A stretch of 64,000 nt of DNA, taken from assembly GCA_048772705.1 (NCBI GenBank), contig JBLWGC010000033.1:1-64000 (forward strand), written 5' to 3'. The notes below the pieces were generated by a model that saw nothing but the letters and a program-made list of their open reading frames with translations, ran no database searches and was not told where the DNA came from. The DNA comes from Leidyana gryllorum EB-2025a (taxonomy: Eukaryota; Protista; Apicomplexa). This document shows positions 3,065 to 35,345 of this stretch, piece by piece (the stretch's first letter is position 1; the number at the start of each line of letters is the position of its first letter). The position numbers were made by a program, and so were the translations under genes.

Positions 3065-3485
3065 TGGTGCGGACCGGCGCCGTTAGTGCTCCTGTTCCCG
3101 CCACAGCCAGTGGCAACTTCGTTATTCGAGGGTTGCAGGACACTAGCCCGCCGTCTAATGACATCCAACATTCGGTCTGGTCGGGGCTCTTCCCAACGGG
3201 CGACCCGCGCCGATGGCGACAATGCCCGGTCCCGTTTCATTCTGTTGCGACCAACTCGGGTGTTCACTACCAGAGGAGAGATTGATGCTATTCGATCCGG
3301 ACTTACACGACCCTAAGGACGACTGAGCGGACGTCATGGAGGTACTGGATATCGAGGGCACCGGGATGGAGGAGGTGCTTTCCCGTGTCGAGACCGCCCG
3401 CAGATCACGAATTAGAGGTGTCTGGCTGAGGGGTACTGTCTGGACACGGCGATTGAGGTCCCCCACCCCTGTTGACACCTCATCG

Positions 3486-6400
3486 TCACCCCACGACGAA
3501 GTGGATTTCACTTCGCCCAAAGACCACGCTTCGCTGTCCATGTCGGACCGTTTCCGGCTGAGGAGTTGGTGGCAACACGTTGTCATCCGAGAGTATATTT
3601 GAGCAGTGACCATTGTCGAAGGAGGGAAAGGGACTAGACGATGGTCAGTCAGAGGGGGGCCGGGCACACAAGTCGACTTACGGTCGTCTTCGACGAGGAG
3701 GGGGACTCTCCCTCTCCGAGGCGGAGGCCACAAGCGGCACCAAACCCGTCGTACCCGTCAGATCGCCCACAATAGATGTCCATCTCCTCTTCTTGTACCG
3801 CTCGCGGTTCCGATAATTCCGTCCATCCCCGCCGTTCTCAACACTCGGCATTTTGGTCAGCTCCATGTCGACCTCTTTGCCGCATTCCTGCACATCCGCA
3901 GGCACCTCCAGAGCCGACTGGTCATTTCCAGCAGCCAGAGTTTGCCACTTTGTACTATTCGCCTGCAACACGGACGCCAAATTGTTGATGTGCCGATTAT
4001 TCTCGTCAAACATTCGCAATTCATACATCATTGGCTGAGAGAGAGAGTGGATTTGAGAACGGGTGGAGGCGGCTTACTGTGACGACGAACTCTATAAATC
4101 CAGACTGAGATTTTGCAAACTCCGTTGCGTGCTTTGACCTGTCACATAGAGGTGATAAAGGGAGGCCCAAGGAAGCTTCCTGTTCCCCTTGGCGGTAAAA
4201 CTCCTCTACCACTCGGAAACACCAGTTCCGATGAATTTCCCAGTCGCAAGCAGACGATGCCAGATCCCCAGCTTTGATACACATCTCCAGCATCAGGCTG
4301 CCACGTGCGTTATCCATTGCAAAGACCCCCAAAACCTCACGTCATGTCCTCCTGATTCCTATATGGATCGAATTCCGGGTCCGATCGACGAAGTTTGAAG
4401 CGGCTGATGTGCTCAAAGTGGCTCTTCATGTCCGTGGCGAGGATTAATTTGATAATCATTTCACGGACCAATCGGAAGATCTCAGTCTTGAAGGGGAAGA
4501 GGACGTTACAATTCTCTCTGAAAATAGCACAGAACAATGAAAGAGTGTAATTTCAGCTTACAACTCGAGTGTCATGAATAGCAGACAACAGTGATAGTTC
4601 TCCAGCACTGAACTGTCATTGTAGATGACCGACTGACGACGACGACAGAGATATATATAATAACCGATTAATTTGGCCCACCAATGGATCGTAAGAGTTG
4701 ACAAAGAATTGATTGTTTCGTCCTGGGTGTCCAACATCGTGTCCTAAGGATGCCAACACATAGGCAATCTCAATAGCGGGGCTGAAAGCCTGTCTGCGGA
4801 GAAGAAAATCAACTTGTTTCACAGATCACAGGTGTGGTGGCGCGCCCAAAGGTAAAGAAAGCAGCACGTGTGACATACCCAGATTTCAAGCCCAAATAAG
4901 AGGACATGGCTGCTGTAGCGTGGGCTACGTGGGCGGCATGGACGGCACTGTGGTATGGAAGTTGACGATATTGCTGCTGCAATCCATAAAGGAAGCTCAT
5001 GAACACAAAGTGATGAAGGACCGAAAAGTGGAGTTCTGGGGGTCCCTCGGAAACCCTGTCGGGCTGCGTGGTCGGCCGCCGTGACGGATTAGGTTTGCTC
5101 AGCGATGCAGCCCGCGTGCCCATTGTTTGCAATATGAGGGACGAGCGTTTTTCGTAGAGTCGCTCGCTTCCAGGAGTCTCGACTGACTTGAGTATCGCAG
5201 GGTCAATCAAGTGGGGATGAGTTTGTATCAAGCTGCTGATCTTCCGTCCAATGAGGGCGTAGCCCACCTCCACCAAGATGTTGCCCCCGCACCGTTCGTC
5301 AAGTTTGTGGAGGTCCAGAGTCCACTGATTTCCCACAATGGCAATTAACTCTTCAGTAAGCTGCCGTTTGGGCAAATCCTCGGGCTTGAAGCCCCCCACA
5401 ACAACCGAGTTCCCCTCCACTGTAGTATCGTCCTCCGAGTCGAACAGATCCGCGCTGCTAAATCTTCGACTCAGCCGACGGGCTGAAGCGGCGTGCATAC
5501 GCCTGCGAGCCAATCGGTGAGTGGCAGCCGAGTCGTCGTCGTCAGACTCATCTTTGGGTATTATTATTTCCTTTTGTGTTCGCGAACGCTTCCATAACAT
5601 TCTTCGCTTGAGAGCGTCTTGCGAACGTTTGGCCCATCGTTTGGACCTACTCGTCCGTGGTGGTCGTGGGGACTCCCGCCGGGCTGGCTGAAACACTCCA
5701 GGTCGGCTCACCATCACTCGTACAGCGTCCTGGATCTGGACGGGACTCGGAAGAGCAGCAGGGCCTCCTGGAAGTACTTCCGCTACAGCCGAGTGGTTTC
5801 GCCGTAAGTCTATCGTGTCAGCCGTGAGCTGATCATCCAGTCGCAGAGAGCCCCCAGCGCGCCATCGAGAGCCACTGGCACCCTCTTCTACACTGTTCTG
5901 TGGCCCCAAGTCTATCCCGTACATTCGGGCATAGTTCAAAGGGACTTGAGCGTTCACGCTGTCATATCGCGCCGTGACTCGCACTTTGAAGAGATCCTGC
6001 ACGCAAACAACGAACCGTTATGACAGCAGAAGGTGAACGAAGGATTGCTGCCATCAGATGGGAAGGCTAAGCCCATGTGGCGGTGTAGAGTGCGGCCAAA
6101 GCCGTGTCTCCGTTCCACCGCACACATGTGTGCAAGCGCAGAAGGAGGAGCGGCACGTACCTGATAACGTGTCAACATTTTCTGAGCCTCTTGTACTCGT
6201 GTGACAATGCGCATTGTACTATCGGTGTACCGCATGGTGCCAGCTGGCGCGGACGAGGCCGTGGTAGCAAGTTTGCCAATCTACAGGACCAGAATTGGAG
6301 GCTTTGAGCAGGTGTTTACCTCACTCAAGAGTGAGAGAACATTTTCCATTCCTGTGGTGGTGAACAGGCTATTGCCGGGTCCTTCATCGACTGAGTCTGA

Positions 6401-7891
6401 AAGGTTGGCCTGTGCTGAAGGTTGTTTGAAGGGTACGATCGGTGGGTTGTTGATTTACCCGCCAAGAGGTGAAAGCCCACATTCTGGCATTGATGTCAAG
6501 CTGACATCGAATAATAAAGCCTCCAGAGACGGTGAGCACCATTAAGAGATCCATGAGCGAGCTAAGACTGAGATTTGGCCTGTTTCTGGCATCCACTTAC
6601 TCCTCAAAAGTCACTTCGCTCGTTCCAATATATCCAGCTAAAGTTGGTCCAAGAATGGAGATAAGTTGGAATACCCAAATCCAAAAGCAGAGATGTGCAC
6701 TACACAGATCCGAATATCAATGTATACAAATGAGCTGTCTCGTACCTGATATATATACTCCTGCCTGCCATAAAGGCCCACAGAACACACCACACTGAGA
6801 TGACCGACCCAAGATGAAGAAGGTAAGGCTGTACACGGGCACCCGAGTCATCAACGAAGAAAAGACCTACGGCTTGCCATGTGGCCACATTGATGGTCAT
6901 CTGCGAAAGCAGCAAAGATGAGCTCCAGCAAGGGTGTGTGGAGGGGTGTGTGTTCACACAGGCCCACACAGTGTAGCGTGTGACTGACCAGACAAAGTAG
7001 AACAACAAGTGTGATTTGGGTGCAGCAGATATTGACGAGGCAGGCGGATTTCATGAACCAAGGTAGTTGTTCGGTATTTTGCTGTGTGGTAGAGGATTTG
7101 ATATCAATGTGTAAGGAGTCTTCGTGTGTGGTGGTAGGGAGTGTGTCTTCGTTCAGGATGGTTGTGAGGCTGTCGAGATGGCGGAGGTGCCACTGATTTC
7201 TAGATGGATATTAGACGGAATTTCGTTGTGGGTGTTACCTGCGAACGAGACATACGACGAAGAGGCACAGGAAGATGAGTGTGTGCATGACCAGTCCTGA
7301 GAGTATGATGAGGAGACGGAGGCCATAACAGTGTGGTTCGCATTTCTCGCTATCGACGCCTGCCAAGGTGAAAGCCCAACCACAAATATATATGGCATAT
7401 AGCATAAGGAGTAGATACATGCGTTGTTTAGTCTCGCGTAGAGTGTGTAATTCTTGATACCGTTCTTCGAGTTCAGCATCACGGAACTTGAAGGCTCGAA
7501 AGACGCTGTAGTGAATAGCTTCAACAAACTCAGATCGATGTAGATCGCTGTGGACGGGGCTTTCGCTAAGATCCATTAACCATCGGGCACAGAGTCTCCG
7601 TATTTTGCTGCTCGCTGTGTGCAGACTAGGTGGCTCGGCAGAGGGAGGCGAACTGCTAAGATCCTCTTCAGACATATGTACGGAGCCCTCCTCATAATAG
7701 AAGGTGCTGTGCATCACCTTGGCGCCCGCCCGCACTCCTCCCCAGTCGCCGCCGGTCGTCGTTGGTTGTACCAAGAGAGCGGATGGCAACCGGCTGGTGC
7801 TCGGGAACGGCGGCTCCCCCCAGGTCACTTTGCTGTGTGACTGAGCCGAATTAGCCGCCGTGGCTGTAGTCAGCTCATCGGAGTGCCTCAT
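3486..7891 (-). CDS. Class I cyclic-nucleotide phosphodiesterase with N-terminal transmembrane region (multi-exon)
   Basis: Catalytic motifs in order across exons: YHSAVHAAHV, LGHDVGHPGRNN, LILATDMKSHF, IKAGDLAS, EEFYRQGEQE, KSQSGFIEFVV. Hydrophobic exons at 6.4-7.5 kb. An intron donor at about 3681 gives a last exon ending at TGA 3486; without it the stop is at 3678. Confidence 0.9.
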
Positions 7892-8023
7892 CCAAATACA
7901 CACCCAAAAAACCAACTTTTACGCTCAGCTACCAGATCGCCTCGTTACCTCGCCCTCTGGCAGACTCATCAACATCTACAACAACTCTTTCAATCACTTC
8001 ATTCTACTAACAAACAAACGAGG

Positions 8024-8163
8024 TGTGCGTCGCCGCGACACCCGGCCGACAAGGCCCCTCATAAGGCCGCGCCGCGCACTCCAAAACTCAAAACTCACCC
8101 GTTCGATGTAAACCTCTGTTATTCGGGACAGAGCTTTCAGACTGCGCGAGCGGTGAGACACTG
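8024..8163 (+). ncRNA. Candidate H/ACA-like two-hairpin RNA upstream of GAR1
   Basis: Hairpin 1 GTGCG..CGGCC/GGCCG..CGCAC, an A-rich hinge, then hairpin 2 CTCAcCCGTTCG..CTCTGTT/GACAGAG..CGAGCGGTGAG followed directly by ACA. No canonical H box. Confidence 0.25.
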
Positions 8164-8435
8164 AGCCGAGAAAGGAAATGCGGGCTTACCTCCCCAGCCC
8201 ATTCACATTGGCCCCGAGGCCGCTAAATAACAGAGCAGGGATGGCAGGATGCACAGCCGGATTCTCGTGAGCTGAAGCGGCCAGATAAGCCCCTTCAATA
8301 GCTCGAACCTCGCCTTCTTTGCGTCCCGCGAATGCCAACCCCGGCCCCATTATACTGGCCGGCTGCTGCTGCTGTTGGTTAGACTCGCCTCCACCGTCCT
8401 CCATGTGGTGTGACCAGTTTCTTAAAAATTTGGCC

Positions 8436-9139
8436 ATGTCATTCCGTGGTGGAGGATTCAGAGGGGGTCGCGGAGGCTTCCGTGGCGGCCGTGGCGGCTT
8501 CCAGCAGCCAATGGGCCCTCCACAGCAAATAATCGGTACGCCGCGTCTCCCAGCACACACATCTTGTTTTCCACGCAGAGGTTGGCAAGTTCTTGCACGT
8601 TTGCGAGAACGAGCTAATTTGCGAGGTCACTAAGCTCGATCAGCAAGTGCCATACTTCAATGGACGCGTATTTCTAGAGAATAAAGCTGAAATAGGCAAA
8701 ATAGACGAAATCCTGGGACCCCTAAACCAGATGGTAAGTCAGCCGCCGGCCCAGTTAGTCAAATAAAGTTTTCCGACAGTATGTTTCGATCAAAATGGCC
8801 GAAGGAGTCAAATCAGACTCTATCCCCGTCAATACGAAGATCTTCCTCGACACACAACAACTCCTCCCTCTTCAGCGCTTCTTGCCCAAAGAGCCCGTTC
8901 TTAAAACTGGAAAGTCTAAGAAACCAGCCGCTGGCGGTGCAGCCGGCGGTCGCGGCGGCCGAGGCGGCCGTGGTGGCCGTGGAGGTGGATTCAGTGGCGG
9001 TCGCGGTGGTGGATTTGGCGGTGGAGGTGGATTTGGTGGTGGACGAGGAGGAGGTGCTCGTGGCGGCGGGTTCGGTGGAGGTAACCGCGGTGGCCTGGGG
9101 TTCGGCGGTGGTAACAGAGGACGCGGCCGTCAGTTCTAG
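8436..9139 (+). CDS. GAR1: H/ACA ribonucleoprotein subunit Gar1
   Basis: Exons 8436-8535, 8579-8733 and 8780-9139. RGG-rich N- and C-termini flank the core VPYFNGRVFLENKAEIGKIDEILGPLN...LLPLQRFLP. Confidence 0.95.
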
Positions 9140-30294: not shown

Positions 30295-31189
30295 GCGACC
30301 CATGCGCCCGACGAGGTCGTCTCACGGAGGAAACGGGAGTGGGAACAGTGATGCTTACACCACACATCCGAACAATTGGCAGATCAACTGTTACAATATT
30401 TGGCCATTTCAGATCTTGTGAAAGTTGGCACGGCACGCTCTCGAGAACGAGGCAGATCTTGCGAACGGCACCGATCCAGGAGATCTAGGCAATACCTCGT
30501 GCATGGCGACTTAAGTCACTGTCAGTTACGAGATGTCTCCGAGGGTCTGCACGGAGGGCACGGCTGCTCTGTGGACAATGGCATTGGAACATTCTTCGGT
30601 CATTTAGACCCAACAAGAGGGGGTGACGACATCCGCAGTGAGTGACAAATGCTTTGTCCCTGATTCCAACGACTGTTCACTCACTGGACCCGTTTGCTGG
30701 ACCGCGCCCTCAATACACCCAGTGTTACATCCCTGTTATGTCGCAATCTGAGGTGGTAAGTGTGATTACAATTCCCGTTGGCCAAGAGTGACAATTGGCC
30801 CGACTCGGCAATTTTGTAAATCGTGCGGATGATCGCTCCAACGGTTCAGTGGACGCTGATTGTACGGCAAGCCACGCTACGCTGACCGAGTTGGCTCATA
30901 ATTCATCGGTCTGTTTAGTTGATCAGTGCACATTACATTAGATAGTAATGAGACACCTTCTGTCCCGCTACCTTTTCCAGGCACGGGAAGCTTAGACGCC
31001 ACCCAAATGTACCTCATACTCATAATTAGCCCCAGACTCGAAGGTTCATTGATATGACAACCGCGTACCACACAGACTGTCCACCTCTTTTTTCATCGTC
31101 GCCCGAGTCAACCGTCCCTCAACATGAAGCTGTCGCATCTTGCGGATCGACCGATCTCACTCAATCTGCTAAAATTAGTCTCGAATGTC

Positions 31190-31350
31190 GGCGTCGAGTC
31201 GAGCCCCGTCCGCCCTCTCAGAAAGTCTCAGGTGGGAGAACCACAATATGTGTGACCCTCCCGGGGGACTTACATTCACCAGAGTGCAGTGGTTGCTCCT
31301 CCCCCTGCGCATCGCTTCTTGAGCCAGACACTGCAACCCGCAGGTAAGTT
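31190..31350 (-). ncRNA. U1: U1 spliceosomal snRNA
   Basis: 5' AACUUACCUG; helix H CGGGU/ACCUG; SL I loop GCUCAAGAAG (70K site); SL II GGGGGA..ACCA-CUGCACUC-UGGU..UCCCCC (U1A site); SL III GGAGGGUCACA/UGUGGUUCUCC; Sm-like GACUUUCUGAG; GC-rich SL IV. Length about 160 nt. Confidence 0.92.
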
Positions 31351-31717
31351 GAGTTTTCTTCCAAGTTTTGTTGAAGATATCAGTCCCGTCTCGTCTCCCC
31401 CTCGACCGACGCCCACCCGCATAAAAGTCAACGAGTTGAGAATTGATGTTTTGAACTCTTCGTTCCGGATGCTGATCCTACTAAGCCTATCGCAGGGTCT
31501 GTTTTTGATCCATCTAGTATTGAGCGCATTTCAGAATCATTAGGAGTGTTGTTCATGTTTTTAGTTCAGTCCACGTAATAATAAAAAGAAATGTAAGCAC
31601 ACGTGTGTGTCTATTCTGTGTCTCCGCTCGATTGATCTAGGAATAATAACCATGTAAAAATATTGCTAATTTGCCTAACTGAGGCATGACTATTGGAATA
31701 AGGGGGTAGCTAGCCGC

Positions 31718-31998
31718 AAAAACAAAGTCAGATCTATTAGGCGCGGTCCGGGCTTGACTGACCAAATTGATGAAAGAAGAAGTTCCAACTGGTTCTCCCC
31801 CACGCTGTCCGAAGTGTGTGGCTGACCCGCTCTGTTCCCAGCCTGGTGTGACCACACGGGTGTCTCTCGACTGTGGACACCTTCCGGTGCGCACCCTCCA
31901 GAGTCTCCAGCCCACCCTGAGGGACCTGTTGATCTGCTTCAGTGTGTTAGTATCGCCTCCCAACCGGGTCACAGTGGGAAGTTATCCCACCAGGCGAC
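31718..31998 (-). ncRNA. Signal recognition particle RNA (7SL)
   Basis: Alu domain UCGCCU..GUGGGA/UCCCAC-UGUGA-CCC..GGG-AGGCGA; helix 5 pairings AGAUC/GAUCU, GGUCC/GGACC and GGGCU/AGCCC; helix 6 GCACC-GGAA-GGUGU; helix 8 CCAGGCUG-GGAA-CAGAGCGGG. Ends in a T5 Pol III terminator. Length about 280 nt. Confidence 0.88.
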
Positions 31999-32047
31999 GA
32001 TTAGTCCAACACTGATCAGCGGTGGGCCGACATCACTTCAGATCATT

Positions 32048-32077
32048 GGTTGGGTCGACCAAGTCGATTACCCATCC
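32048..32077. promoter_or_regulatory. Putative back-to-back snRNA upstream sequence elements (USE/PSE) for SRP and U5
   Basis: Dyad GGTTGGG-TCGAC-caa-GTCGA-tta-CCCATCC. Each CCCAWCC half lies about 50-60 nt upstream of its inferred start. Confidence 0.5.
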
Positions 32078-32130
32078 GTTACATCCAGTACACACGCCGT
32101 CTCCGGCGGCTGGCGGGTCTCAGCTCCAAA

Positions 32131-32237
32131 ATTGGTGTGGAGAGTGCCTCAACGCTTATCACCCTCTCGCCTTTTACTAGATGGTGCAGTGAGGCGCTCG
32201 CTTTAACGCTTCAACTTTCTTGAGGACCTCTGGTCTG
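32131..32237 (+). ncRNA. U5: U5 spliceosomal snRNA
   Basis: Invariant loop 1 CGCCUUUUACU (32168-32178) closed by CACC-C-UCU/AGA-U-GGUG. Lower stems GAGUGCCUCA/UGAGGCGCUC and GGUGU/ACGCU. Sm-like AACUUUCUUG (32213-32222), then 3' hairpin GGACC/GGUCU. Confidence 0.92.
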
Positions 32238-32999
32238 ACGTTGGATTCATTCGTGTGGGCGGAGCTATGTGCGAAGACGAGCACCATTTTGGAATGTTGA
32301 CTCGTACGTAAACTTGTTCATGAGGCTGATTGGTTATGATTGTGGATCTACGATGATTTGAGTGCTTGTCGAGATGGAGCCAGTGTGAGGGACGGAGCCC
32401 TCACCTTCCAGAGGCCCAAGGGTTGGGCAAAATAAATTTCCTCCGGCAGCGCTGTGAGGAATTGGAGTGACTCGGAGGGTTTGGAGATCGCCTGACGCAA
32501 TGCTGAGTTATTATGCAATCCCTGCATTCGGTCCCGCGGTTGTGTTAGCAAAAGGGTAGACTGGTGACGTTAAGTTGTATTGAGGTGCCATGACTTGCGG
32601 GAGAGCATTATGCAACCCATCATTCCGGTTATTTGGCGAGTACGACTTGTGAAGTCTGTGGGAACATAATCGGCGGAAGGATCTACGTGATCTGAATGAG
32701 GTCATTGGATACGTTCTGTCCGGCACTGCAACGATCGGAGTACGGGAAGCTCTAACCCTATCTCTGCGAATGTCGACATAGCGCCAGACGCCGATCCTTC
32801 CCGTTCCACTCCCACCCATTCACCGCACTTGAGACACATTGGCAGAAAATGATGCCGCCTCAATTTTCCCCTCCAACTCTTCGTATCTCGAGCCCGAGAA
32901 GATAATTTCGTCACTCAGTCGATGAATACGTTGACGGCAATGCCGGACTCTGTGGCGAGTGCCTTGATGTCTGGTCGACACGATATATCGCTTTCGACG

Positions 33000-33870
33000 G
33001 GCAACTATGAAACACAACGATTTTCCGGCGCAGCTGGACATGAGCAAACAACTGCTTCGTATCGAAGGTAAAATCAGGGAACGTTCACTCGTCGACGACG
33101 ATGCGGCTGAAGAGCGCATTCCAATGCTCAGTAATCGGCGATCGACATCAACACAAAGTAACAACAAAGATCTCAACTCCGTCACCAAGAGTGACTACAA
33201 TTCCACAAGACTGGACCGATGCTTGAAGCGGGAGTCATAGAGCGCGATGAAGATCCCGCGGCCAACATCCAAGTCATAGCTTCTCGATTGGGGAGGCCAT
33301 CGATCGATTCTTGGGAGACAGAGGAACATAGCTTGGCGCCTCTGAGGACCCCTGCGAGCTGCAGCGCATGGGATGGAAATAATGAGAGTCTCACTCATCA
33401 AACGTCTTGTCTCACACAACGTGGAGGCTTCCAGCGACCTCGACTTGTGCGAACCACAGGAGGAGCGTCAATTCACGGATTCTCAAACTCCGTTGTTCAG
33501 AGATGCAGTGGACATATGGGGACGACAAGAGCTTGGGAGACTGATCGGCACAGCCTGTGGGAAGCAGCCCATATTCTCGCCGGCGGGGGGCTGGCAACCG
33601 ACAGTTGCACCAACTTTGAAGACACCGTGCCGAGTCCGAGGGGATTCCCGAATCGCGGAGACGCCACTCACGGGCCCGCAATACAGCCACGAATAATACA
33701 GACGGTGTTTGTTTTGACAAAGGAGGATCGGAAGGACATAATGACGCGAATGCGAAAACTTTAAAGCTCATTGGAGGTGTGCTCTAACCGTGCGCAAGCG
33801 AAGTGGTGCTGTGACCCGCAATATTACAGATGCACGACACTGTCTTAAATGCGAGTGCTCTTGTTGCCCA
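33000..33870 (+). pseudogene. Highly decayed Ty3/Gypsy pol-like relic
   Basis: Scattered fragments in different frames: KDLNSVTKSDY, MLEAGVIER and HQTSCLTQRGGFQ (RT-like), plus AHW..TVRK..D..HCLKC (integrase Zn-finger-like). No YxDD motif seen. Confidence 0.35.
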
Positions 33871-33953
33871 GCAGCGATCTAGTCAAAGATTCTTCCATTG
33901 AGTGACACTTACGGGTGGACCCAAACACTCGAGACTCATCCCTCCTGTCCCAC

Positions 33954-35345
33954 TCACATACATTGACGGCAGTTGGGACAAATGGCGGGATCAGATAATG
34001 GTGTATCACCTTGTTCCTCCAACTTGCTCAACTCCAACCCGAGATGAACTATCTCTTCACCCAATCGATGAAGAACTTCACGACAGTTCCGGACTTCGTG
34101 GTGAATTGCTTCGATATCGCCTTTGTCATCTTTTGCCCTCTGGAATGACGAGATGGCAGCACTGAGGTCTGTCTTCAGATAGGTGAGGGCTTCCACGACG
34201 CTGTAGTTGGGTTTGACCGGGGGCAGCGCACCCTCAGCATCGCAGTGCGTCTCGCAGTGCCTCTTAGCCTTGCGCTGAGCAGGAAGTGTAGGTACCTTAA
34301 TAGCTTCGGAGTTTGAGGAAACCGTTCCGAGCGATGATTGCTTTGGGCGAGGCTTCGACCCTTTATCCAACGCCGATACCACAGGAGCCGCGACTTTTGA
34401 CAGAGAACTTTTGGTGAATGGAAGTTCAGGAGATGCCACGGAGGGGGGCAACCCGACAATACTTCCACTCGGCAACGGCGGTGATGACATCTTCGCCTCA
34501 AGGGTCGACAAGAGTCTGAGAAGAGGCAAATGGCCACCTGACCCACACTCTTCATAGGCGGCCTGGAAGAGACATCGTCGTAGCGTCTCTTCCCGTTCCA
34601 CAGAGAACACTTTGTTGCGCAATCTGTAACTGCAGTATATGCCGTGATGAAAGCGAACTCACGACTTTTTTAGCTCATCAATGCGAGATCTATGTTGTTG
34701 CGACGAATTGTGCCTCTCAGCAAGAACAAGAGAAGTGAAGTCGGTGATCGGTGCGATCGTCCTCAGACCATCTGTCCAGGACGATTTAGCGGAGCTGACG
34801 CGAGCCGTTCCCTCTCGCAGCCAATCTGTTGGGGTGTAGTAAGAGTTTCGCCGCTGAGCATCGACGAACACGACGGTTTTCGGTGGGAGTTGTTGATAAG
34901 CCGGCAGATGTTCGGTATCAAAGATATTGTGCCGGCAGTCTGCTGTGTCTGCGACGGTGGAGATCAACAACACATCACCAATGAGCCCCCCGAACCTCAG
35001 TAGTTGGGGATTGACGCCAACACAGTAGACCAACAAACTCCCCACATCCGTCACGGGACCGATCACAATTCTACCATCACCACGTCCGCGTGGAGCGGAC
35101 TCATCGAAGCTGGAACCATAGAGCTCGTTGAGGATTGACGCAACATTGGGATCTGGATTGGCGTACTCATCGCACTGATAATACCCCGATCTATGGGAGT
35201 TGGGTGGCGAGTAAGCAGAAAATCCAACGATTATATGACGAAAGTTCTTGAGCTTCGTATTCTCAAAAGTGGCAGTCGTTTTGACTATTGGACCTCCAAA
35301 TGTATCGGCGCTCAGAAGGGTCTCATTCGAGTTCGAGTTCAACAT
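33954..35345 (-). CDS. Hypothetical protein (2 exons, about 450 aa) with C-terminal coiled coil and CxxCxxC end
   Basis: ORFs 34659-35450 and 33954-34622 joined by a GTGAGT..TTACAG intron. Confidence 0.6.

Follow-up and report, generated by a model that had tools for sequence, protein, structure and literature searches.

A dispersed, multi-copy U1-SRP-U5 RNA gene cassette in the genome of a gregarine-like protist

We analyzed a stretch of 64,000 nucleotides (hereafter, the window) from contig JBLWGC010000033.1 of Leidyana gryllorum EB-2025a, whose genome is that of a gregarine-like protist. The window contains a compact cluster of three small-RNA genes, encoding U1 small nuclear RNA (snRNA), the RNA of the signal recognition particle (SRP), and U5 snRNA. 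Our analysis makes it likely that positions 31187-32262 of the window are one copy of a dispersed, multi-copy U1-SRP-U5 cassette, whose genes form separate transcription units and which has spread via segmental duplication. In this cassette, U1 and SRP RNA are encoded on the minus strand and U5 on the plus strand, and at least ten cassettes with this order and orientation are present in the 15.5-Mb genome, at 70-90% identity. An earlier reading of the sequence alone (the sequence-only reading) had proposed that these three RNA genes lie here and that they form a genuine mixed spliceosomal/SRP cluster. Rfam matches and covariation among paralogues bear out the genes and their positions, and the recurrence of order and orientation in at least ten copies bears out the cluster.

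Identification of the three RNA genes

We scanned the whole window with Rfam at gathering thresholds, and positions 30400-33200 in a permissive run. The first scan returned a single match, U5, at 32134-32236 on the plus strand. The permissive scan added two minus-strand matches, one to U1 and one to the SRP clan. Support from Rfam covariance models, which the sequence-only reading had proposed as a check on all three genes, was thus obtained above the gathering threshold for U5, while U1 and SRP RNA were found but fell below it. We accepted these two sub-threshold calls because their paralogues in the same genome covary. All genome searches described below were conducted on the window's own assembly (15.5 Mb in 237 contigs), whose contigs we cite by number; the window is C33:1-64000, the contig being 317,743 bp long. 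Where a contig carries two cassette copies, these are denoted a and b.

The U1 gene extends over positions 31188-31351 on the minus strand and matches RF00003 with 47.4 bits (local E 4e-10). Its 5' end, ACUUACCUG, the element that pairs with the 5' splice site, is invariant in all 19 aligned copies. The loop of stem-loop 1 (SL1), CUCAAGAAG, which holds the U1-70K motif, aligns to GAUCAAGAAG in the model, and the SL2 loop, ACUGCAC, which holds the U1A motif, aligns to the model's AUUGCAC. The Sm-like site, ACUUUCUGA, is non-canonical. The RNAalifold consensus of the 19 paralogues is a four-helix junction with SL1-SL3, followed by SL4 after the Sm site. Compensatory changes were observed in 25 of its 40 pairs, and the window copy keeps 38 of these pairs intact. 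Overall, the assembly holds at least 42 U1 matches, including tandem arrays with a period of 342 bp; such arrays are located at C216:5002-13790 (more than 25 copies) and C159:287498-291432 (about 12 copies).

The U5 gene (32134-32236, plus strand) matches RF00020 with 48 bits, above the gathering score of 40, and is one of 14 U5 matches in the assembly. Loop I, GCCUUUUACUA, and its closing stem are invariant across all 14 copies, and 13 of the 25 consensus pairs covary, in the outer stem and in the 3' stem-loop. All 25 pairs are intact in the window copy. The 3' stem-loop is preceded by an Sm-like site, for which the canonical type is RAUUUUUGR; the site reads ACUUUCUUG in the window and ACUUUGUUG in the majority of sister copies, while one paralogue has AUUUUUGG. 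Beyond the gene lies a conserved 3' flank (32237-32262, plus strand), at whose end, around 32259-32262, the homology between cassette families stops. It includes the motif YGACR, found past the 3' stem in 14 of 14 U5 copies (32237-32245 in the window), and judging from its sequence it is a possible signal for 3'-end formation. Nearly every U1 in our U1 alignment (A3) terminates in GCCGAC(A); it is possible that this ending and the YGACR that follows the 3' hairpin of U5 represent a common 3'-end signal.

The SRP RNA gene (7SL-type) is located at 31773-32001 on the minus strand, as supported by the Rfam SRP clan, an alignment of 11 paralogues, and a covarying fold. The gene is about 229 nt long (32001-31773), with a 5' end that is approximate to within about 5 nt. 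Here we depart from the sequence-only reading, which had placed the RNA at about 280 nt and ended it in a run of five T residues (T5). That run (31718-31722) sits outside the gene, within an inserted repeat of 318 bp that resembles a long terminal repeat (LTR) and is described below, and it is because of this repeat that the 3' end was misjudged from sequence alone. For the same reason we rejected a terminal SRP helix present in the Rfam alignment (GACUAAUCG with UUUGGUCAGUC): its 3' strand lies within the inserted LTR-like repeat and is missing from the copies on C85, C159, C12, C104, and C41. The alignment of all copies puts the 3' end of the RNA at a T-run immediately past the 3' strand of helix 5. 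This run is T9 in C104, T7 in C41, T5 on both C82 and C186, T4 in C85, and only T3 in the window, where the gene ends in CUUCUUCUUU.

Ten SRP RNA genes in the assembly were matched by the Rfam model and an eleventh by DNA similarity, and they share 58-92% identity with the window copy. The consensus fold of the 11 copies is canonical, comprising helices 2-4 of the Alu domain, helix 5, and helices 6 and 8, both capped by GGAA loops, and 95.2% of its cells are paired. Double changes occur in 29 of the 64 pairs, compared with 8.4 +/- 2.4 in column shuffles (none of 500 reaching the observed value) and 3-14 in slid controls. In the Alu domain (helices 2, 3, and 4 and the UGUNR turn), columns 7-47 of the SRP alignment (A1) are 100% paired in all 11 copies, and three pairs covary. 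In the predicted fold of the S domain, helix 6 ends in a GGAA loop, and helix 8 carries a GGAA loop together with the AGC/GGUCA motif (the SRP54-binding internal loops were the feature tested here); the stretch AGGCUGG..AACAGAGCGGGUCA aligns to helix 8 of the model with high posterior probability. The window copy keeps 61 of the 64 consensus pairs and folds canonically on its own (z -2.07).

At least five divergent SRP lineages coexist in one 15.5-Mb genome, and in all of them the canonical fold is kept through compensatory changes. The divergent loci, 58-76% identical to the window copy, are L033 (C104:250530-250759), L039:1900-2133 (C41), L025:4883-5114 (C12), and L029:5033-5263 (C159). Each of the 11 SRP RNA genes that we found has a U1 gene within about 3 kb.

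Copies of the cassette and their spread

Cassettes with the same order and orientation as in the window were found on C12, C82 (two copies), C85, C152, C159, and C186 (two copies). Partial cassettes are present on C35 (U5-U1) and C41 (U1-SRP), and C104 carries a rearranged SRP/U1 pair. The cassette copies span at least three divergent lineages, and the RNA genes of some lineages are only 58-82% identical. Because at least ten copies, divergent lineages included, preserve one order and orientation, we consider the arrangement to be maintained rather than accidental. The window cassette is 86-90% identical to most copies and 70% identical to that on C159. Relative to the C159 copy, the three genes are conserved at 82, 76, and 74%, and the spacers at 62, 52, and 38%. 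Between families, homology starts at the 3' end of U1 (31187) and stops some 25 nt beyond U5 (about 32262). Metagenome contigs gave no match in two exact-pattern scans, one for an SRP Alu-domain pattern and one for a U5 loop-I pattern.

The cluster, which the sequence-only reading had called hidden, is therefore neither hidden nor unique but one member of a dispersed family; it also belongs to a segmental duplicate that measures at least 4.8 kb. The latter (30298-35092, about 90% identity, with several indels) is shared only with C85 (20501-26420). This duplicate contains the cassette and unannotated sequence, whose open reading frames (ORFs) have no Pfam match. Other duplications differ in extent. 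C82b and C186b have 1.4 kb in common, and the two C186 cassettes belong to a duplication of at least 5.2 kb with 96.5% identity, in opposite orientations (3324-8548 and 83791-88999), near both ends of the contig. Some family members are damaged: C186a (7679-8592) has lost U5, and in C82a the U1 gene is displaced by 3 kb. C82b and C186b also share about 214 bp beyond U5 (L030:4377-4590; L021), a segment that is absent from the window and in which Rfam gave no match at E 0.01 or better.

Outside the duplication families, the sequences that flank the cassettes are unrelated between copies. A tblastn search of the window ORFs against the flanks of the other copies recovered only the cassette itself and the C85 duplicate, with no protein-level synteny, and on this basis we rejected the possibility that the copies represent orthologous or homeologous loci. 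Since the duplications vary in extent and the flanks show no protein-level synteny, we conclude that the cassette spread via segmental duplication. DNA-level duplications of variable extent would have dispersed the cassette, and the RNA genes would subsequently have been kept under purifying selection.

Upstream boxes, polymerase assignment, and an inserted repeat

As SRP RNA is encoded on the minus strand and U5 on the plus strand, the two genes diverge from a spacer of 132 bp (32002-32133). Upstream regions of divergent lineages cannot be aligned apart from short boxes at fixed distances, and three such elements, to which we ascribe a putative function, are found in this spacer: ATGTC at about -32 of SRP (near 32033); CCCATCCG (32071-32078), which lies at -77 of SRP and, in the opposite orientation, at -63 of U5; and a near-palindrome containing GAGAC (32096-32110). 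The candidate U1 promoter (31352-31440, minus strand) has GAGAC/GGGAC boxes at about -30 to -55 (31376-31398) and CGGGTGGG at -68 (31412-31419), and both of these blocks are kept even in the 70%-identical C159 copy.

The same boxes recur upstream of related genes in the assembly. CGGRTGGG, whose background frequency is 0.125 per kb, is found at -75 to -77 in four of the five SRP lineages, and the cassette U1 genes have it at -67/-68. ATGTY is present at -31/-32 in all five SRP lineages; the two types of U6 gene have it at -39, but only 2 of 38 U1, U2, U4, and U5 genes have it between -48 and -25. The latter genes are in turn enriched for GGGACA/GGAGAC about 40-60 nt upstream (p ~1e-9), a box that occurs upstream of the cassette U1 and, reversed, upstream of the cassette U5. 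No T-run directly follows U1 or U5. Most U2 genes also have a near-palindromic box of their own, GTGTCGCACAC, about 40 nt upstream (e.g., at L065, L066, L067, and L070), often followed by GGTAT or GGTACC.

Given the SRP T-runs, the restriction of ATGTY to SRP and U6, and the lack of a T-run past U1 and U5, we model SRP RNA as a product of RNA polymerase III (Pol III) and U1 and U5 as Pol II-type genes. The sequence-only reading had put forward the same mixture of polymerases, and it had relied on the T5 run for SRP. That argument no longer stands; the mixture is now suggested by the T-runs of the SRP genes, by ATGTY in SRP and U6, and by U1 and U5 genes that have neither. Judging from these sequence features, U1, SRP, and U5 are probably each a transcription unit of their own. 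Transcription of SRP by Pol III would start from an external, bipartite promoter, in which CGGRTGGG (about -76) is the distal and ATGTY (about -32) the proximal box, and would end in a T-run, and U1 and U5 would be transcribed from Pol II-type snRNA promoters with GAGAC/GGGAC boxes. U1 has a CGGRTGGG box of its own. U5 would depend on the one box of SRP, in its reverse orientation, and SRP and U5 would have the 132-bp spacer as a common bidirectional control region. Since CGGRTGGG occurs near the middle of the SRP-U5 spacer as well as upstream of U1, it is plausible that these genes use a factor in common.

The cluster is interrupted by the LTR-like repeat mentioned above (318 bp, 31447-31764), which has TG...CA termini and is bordered by a target-site duplication, AATTGA, at 31441-31446 and 31765-31770. 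The sequence-only reading had described retroelement debris around the cluster. A Pfam search of six flanking ORFs gave no match, either to a protein gene or to a retroelement, and the sole retroelement-like piece seen is this repeat, inside the cluster. The C85 cassette is uninterrupted and has a single AATTGA. Because it thus represents an empty site, and the window carries the target duplication, the LTR-like piece is a later insertion. The element inserted once duplication had taken place, 3 nt downstream of the T-run of the window SRP gene.

Stand-alone copies of the repeat, 92-96% identical, are present on C123, C155, C27, and C72 (loci L041:1207-1520, L040:4-317, L042:1118-1431, and L043:936-1251). 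Those on C123 and C72 have 5-bp duplications of their own, that on C27 has none, and that on C155 is cut by the contig end. All of them lie within dense arrays of tRNA genes, with one such gene 12-60 nt away. Our genome search for a full-length element returned solitary copies only, and "solo LTR" would be only a label here, since it is based on the TG...CA ends and the 5-bp duplications.

The LTR-like repeat is also found within most cassette copies, where the duplications adjacent to SRP differ from copy to copy: AATTGA in the window, ATGAT in C82a, GTCGG in C152, and GAACT in C159. Together with the empty site on C85, these copy-specific duplications indicate that the repeat inserted independently at least three times, within about 12 bp on the 3' side of the SRP terminator. 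This suggests that the family integrates in a Pol III-targeted manner, as do Ty3 and the Dictyostelium TRE elements.

Activity of the window copy, alternative explanations, and known systems

Whether the window copy is active is the weakest link in our argument. Its sequence indicates that it is probably functional, and we infer that it is expressed. Several observations, however, weigh against our interpretation. The U1 match lies below the RF00003 gathering score of 69.5, and the SRP matches lie below theirs, both for Archaea_SRP (39.3 bits against 96.5, at 31756-32006 on the minus strand) and for Protozoa_SRP (37.3 bits against 65, at 31776-31978). The promoter boxes were picked out by eye and by k-mer enrichment in a few dozen related genes rather than experimentally, and their orientation varies between genes in a manner that a simple promoter model does not explain. 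In the window itself, the SRP terminator is only T3, three SRP pairs are non-standard compared with none in C82a, C82b, and C186a, and the U5 Sm-like site has a C where the C82, C186, C152, and C159 copies have a G. Moreover, a U1 gene on C104 (68.9 bits, the best U1 of the genome) and a U5 gene on C12 (55.4 bits) score higher, and the window copy may therefore contribute little.

These features of the window copy, and the higher-scoring genes elsewhere, speak for an alternative in which the window cassette is degenerating into a pseudogene, still at an early stage, and persists only as a passenger of a segmental duplication, with functional U1, U5, and SRP RNA supplied by better copies. The shortened terminator would then lead to read-through of about 50 nt into the LTR-like insert, until the next T5, and the loss of U5 from C186a demonstrates that other members of the family are clearly damaged. 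We nevertheless regard such decay as unlikely. The window U1 is 99% identical to the C85 copy, no U5 pair is broken, and the promoter boxes are all intact. Of the three SRP mismatches, two are resolved by an alternative register of helix 6. Folded as a single sequence, the SRP RNA takes the canonical form, and the genes are still more conserved than the spacers.

The other two explanations that we considered concern the family as a whole. The sharp boundaries of inter-family homology, at the 3' end of U1 and about 25 nt past U5, and the LTR-like element within most copies could point to a cassette that is itself a transposable unit or the cargo of a mobile element, and that owes its spread to transposition or retroposition instead of segmental duplication. 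Yet the alignment reveals no target-site duplication, terminal repeat, or poly-A at the cassette ends, and we thus rejected a mobile cassette with its own termini. Divergent units with intact upstream promoters are not expected from retroposed RNA, the duplications differ in extent (as described above for C85, C82b/C186b, and C186), and the internal LTR-like piece arrived later, as its empty site on C85 indicates. Mobility of this kind is, in our view, very improbable. We give even less credence to the possibility that several species or strains were assembled together and that the divergent "paralogues" are their orthologues, in which case the copy number per genome would be overstated. SRP RNAs that are only 58-76% identical are unusual within one 15.5-Mb assembly, and many copies lie near contig ends. 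However, C82 and C186 each carry two copies, C159 has both a divergent cassette and a U1 array, the flanks of different copies show no protein-level synteny, and the same LTR-like family and tRNA arrays are found throughout the contigs. A dispersed cassette that spread within one genome by segmental duplication remains the explanation that we favor.

Compared with the Rfam families for U1 (RF00003), U5 (RF00020), and SRP (clan CL00003), the genes of the cassette agree in their folds and functional motifs. They differ in the scores of U1 and SRP, which do not reach the curated thresholds, in the non-canonical Sm sites (of the ACUUUCUG type), and in the shortness of the SRP RNA. In literature searches on gregarine snRNA and on clusters of U1, SRP, and U5, we came across no account of a U1-SRP-U5 cassette or of how snRNA genes are organized in gregarines.

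In trypanosomatids, small-RNA genes (7SL, U-snRNAs, and U3) have divergently oriented tRNA genes as neighbors and draw promoter elements from them. Our cassette resembles this arrangement in placing 7SL/SRP RNA in a compact, mixed small-RNA cluster and in having a short divergent intergenic region that would act both ways, as a functional analogue. In contrast to trypanosomatids, the divergent partner here is U5 and not a tRNA gene (ARAGORN found none anywhere in the window), and no dependence on A and B boxes is suggested.

The closest described case of linked, multi-copy small-RNA genes is that of Euglena gracilis. Many small-RNA gene variants of this organism are reported to be linked to a different small-RNA gene and to form families by spacer similarity, which was attributed to locus or segmental duplication; the same report also mentions the case of U3-tRNA linkage. 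As in the Euglena U3-U5 type, linkage in the gregarine-like genome is repeated in many sequence variants grouped by spacer similarity, here in at least ten copies and at least three lineages. Unlike the partners in Euglena, U3 and U5, which are convergent, those of our cassette are U1, SRP, and U5, with SRP and U5 divergent. Our cassette also differs in that one gene presumed to be transcribed by Pol III occurs together with genes presumed to be transcribed by Pol II, and in an upstream box that would serve two of them.

The predicted promoters can likewise be set beside known ones. The proximal sequence element (PSE) and TATA box of vertebrates and the upstream sequence element (USE) and TATA box of plants constitute external (type-3-like) snRNA promoters, in which the upstream box is found in both polymerase classes. 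In Dictyostelium, the corresponding element, DUSE, lies at about -60 (PMC7919456). The gregarine-like genome is similar in having a common box about 60-75 nt upstream of presumed Pol II- and Pol III-type genes, with a proximal second box, ATGTY, marking the presumed Pol III genes, SRP and U6. It is dissimilar in the sequences of the boxes, in that no TATA box was seen, and in that the distal box occurs in either orientation.

A more far-reaching interpretation is that the cassette is a co-inherited module for matched variant ribonucleoproteins. The divergent U1, U5, and SRP sets would then all be expressed and specialized, for example by life-cycle stage, and the orientation-dependent upstream box, with or without ATGTY, would set Pol II versus Pol III on either side of the 132-bp bidirectional promoter. 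We consider this scenario speculative and rather improbable. As a weaker companion to it, the amplification of small-RNA genes (tRNAs, U1 arrays, and cassettes) may be mechanistically tied to an LTR-like element that lands past Pol III terminators.

Our findings add three unannotated, essential RNA genes and many of their paralogues to a poorly studied, early-branching apicomplexan lineage. They also indicate that Rfam gathering thresholds overlook U1 and SRP RNA in this genome, which is relevant to genome annotators. SRP RNA is normally a low-copy gene in small parasite genomes, whereas here there are at least 11 structurally constrained variants, each linked to U1. Finally, the upstream boxes provide a testable promoter grammar for gregarine small-RNA genes, in which a distal CGGRTGGG would be found in presumed Pol II and Pol III genes alike and a proximal ATGTY in SRP and U6 only.

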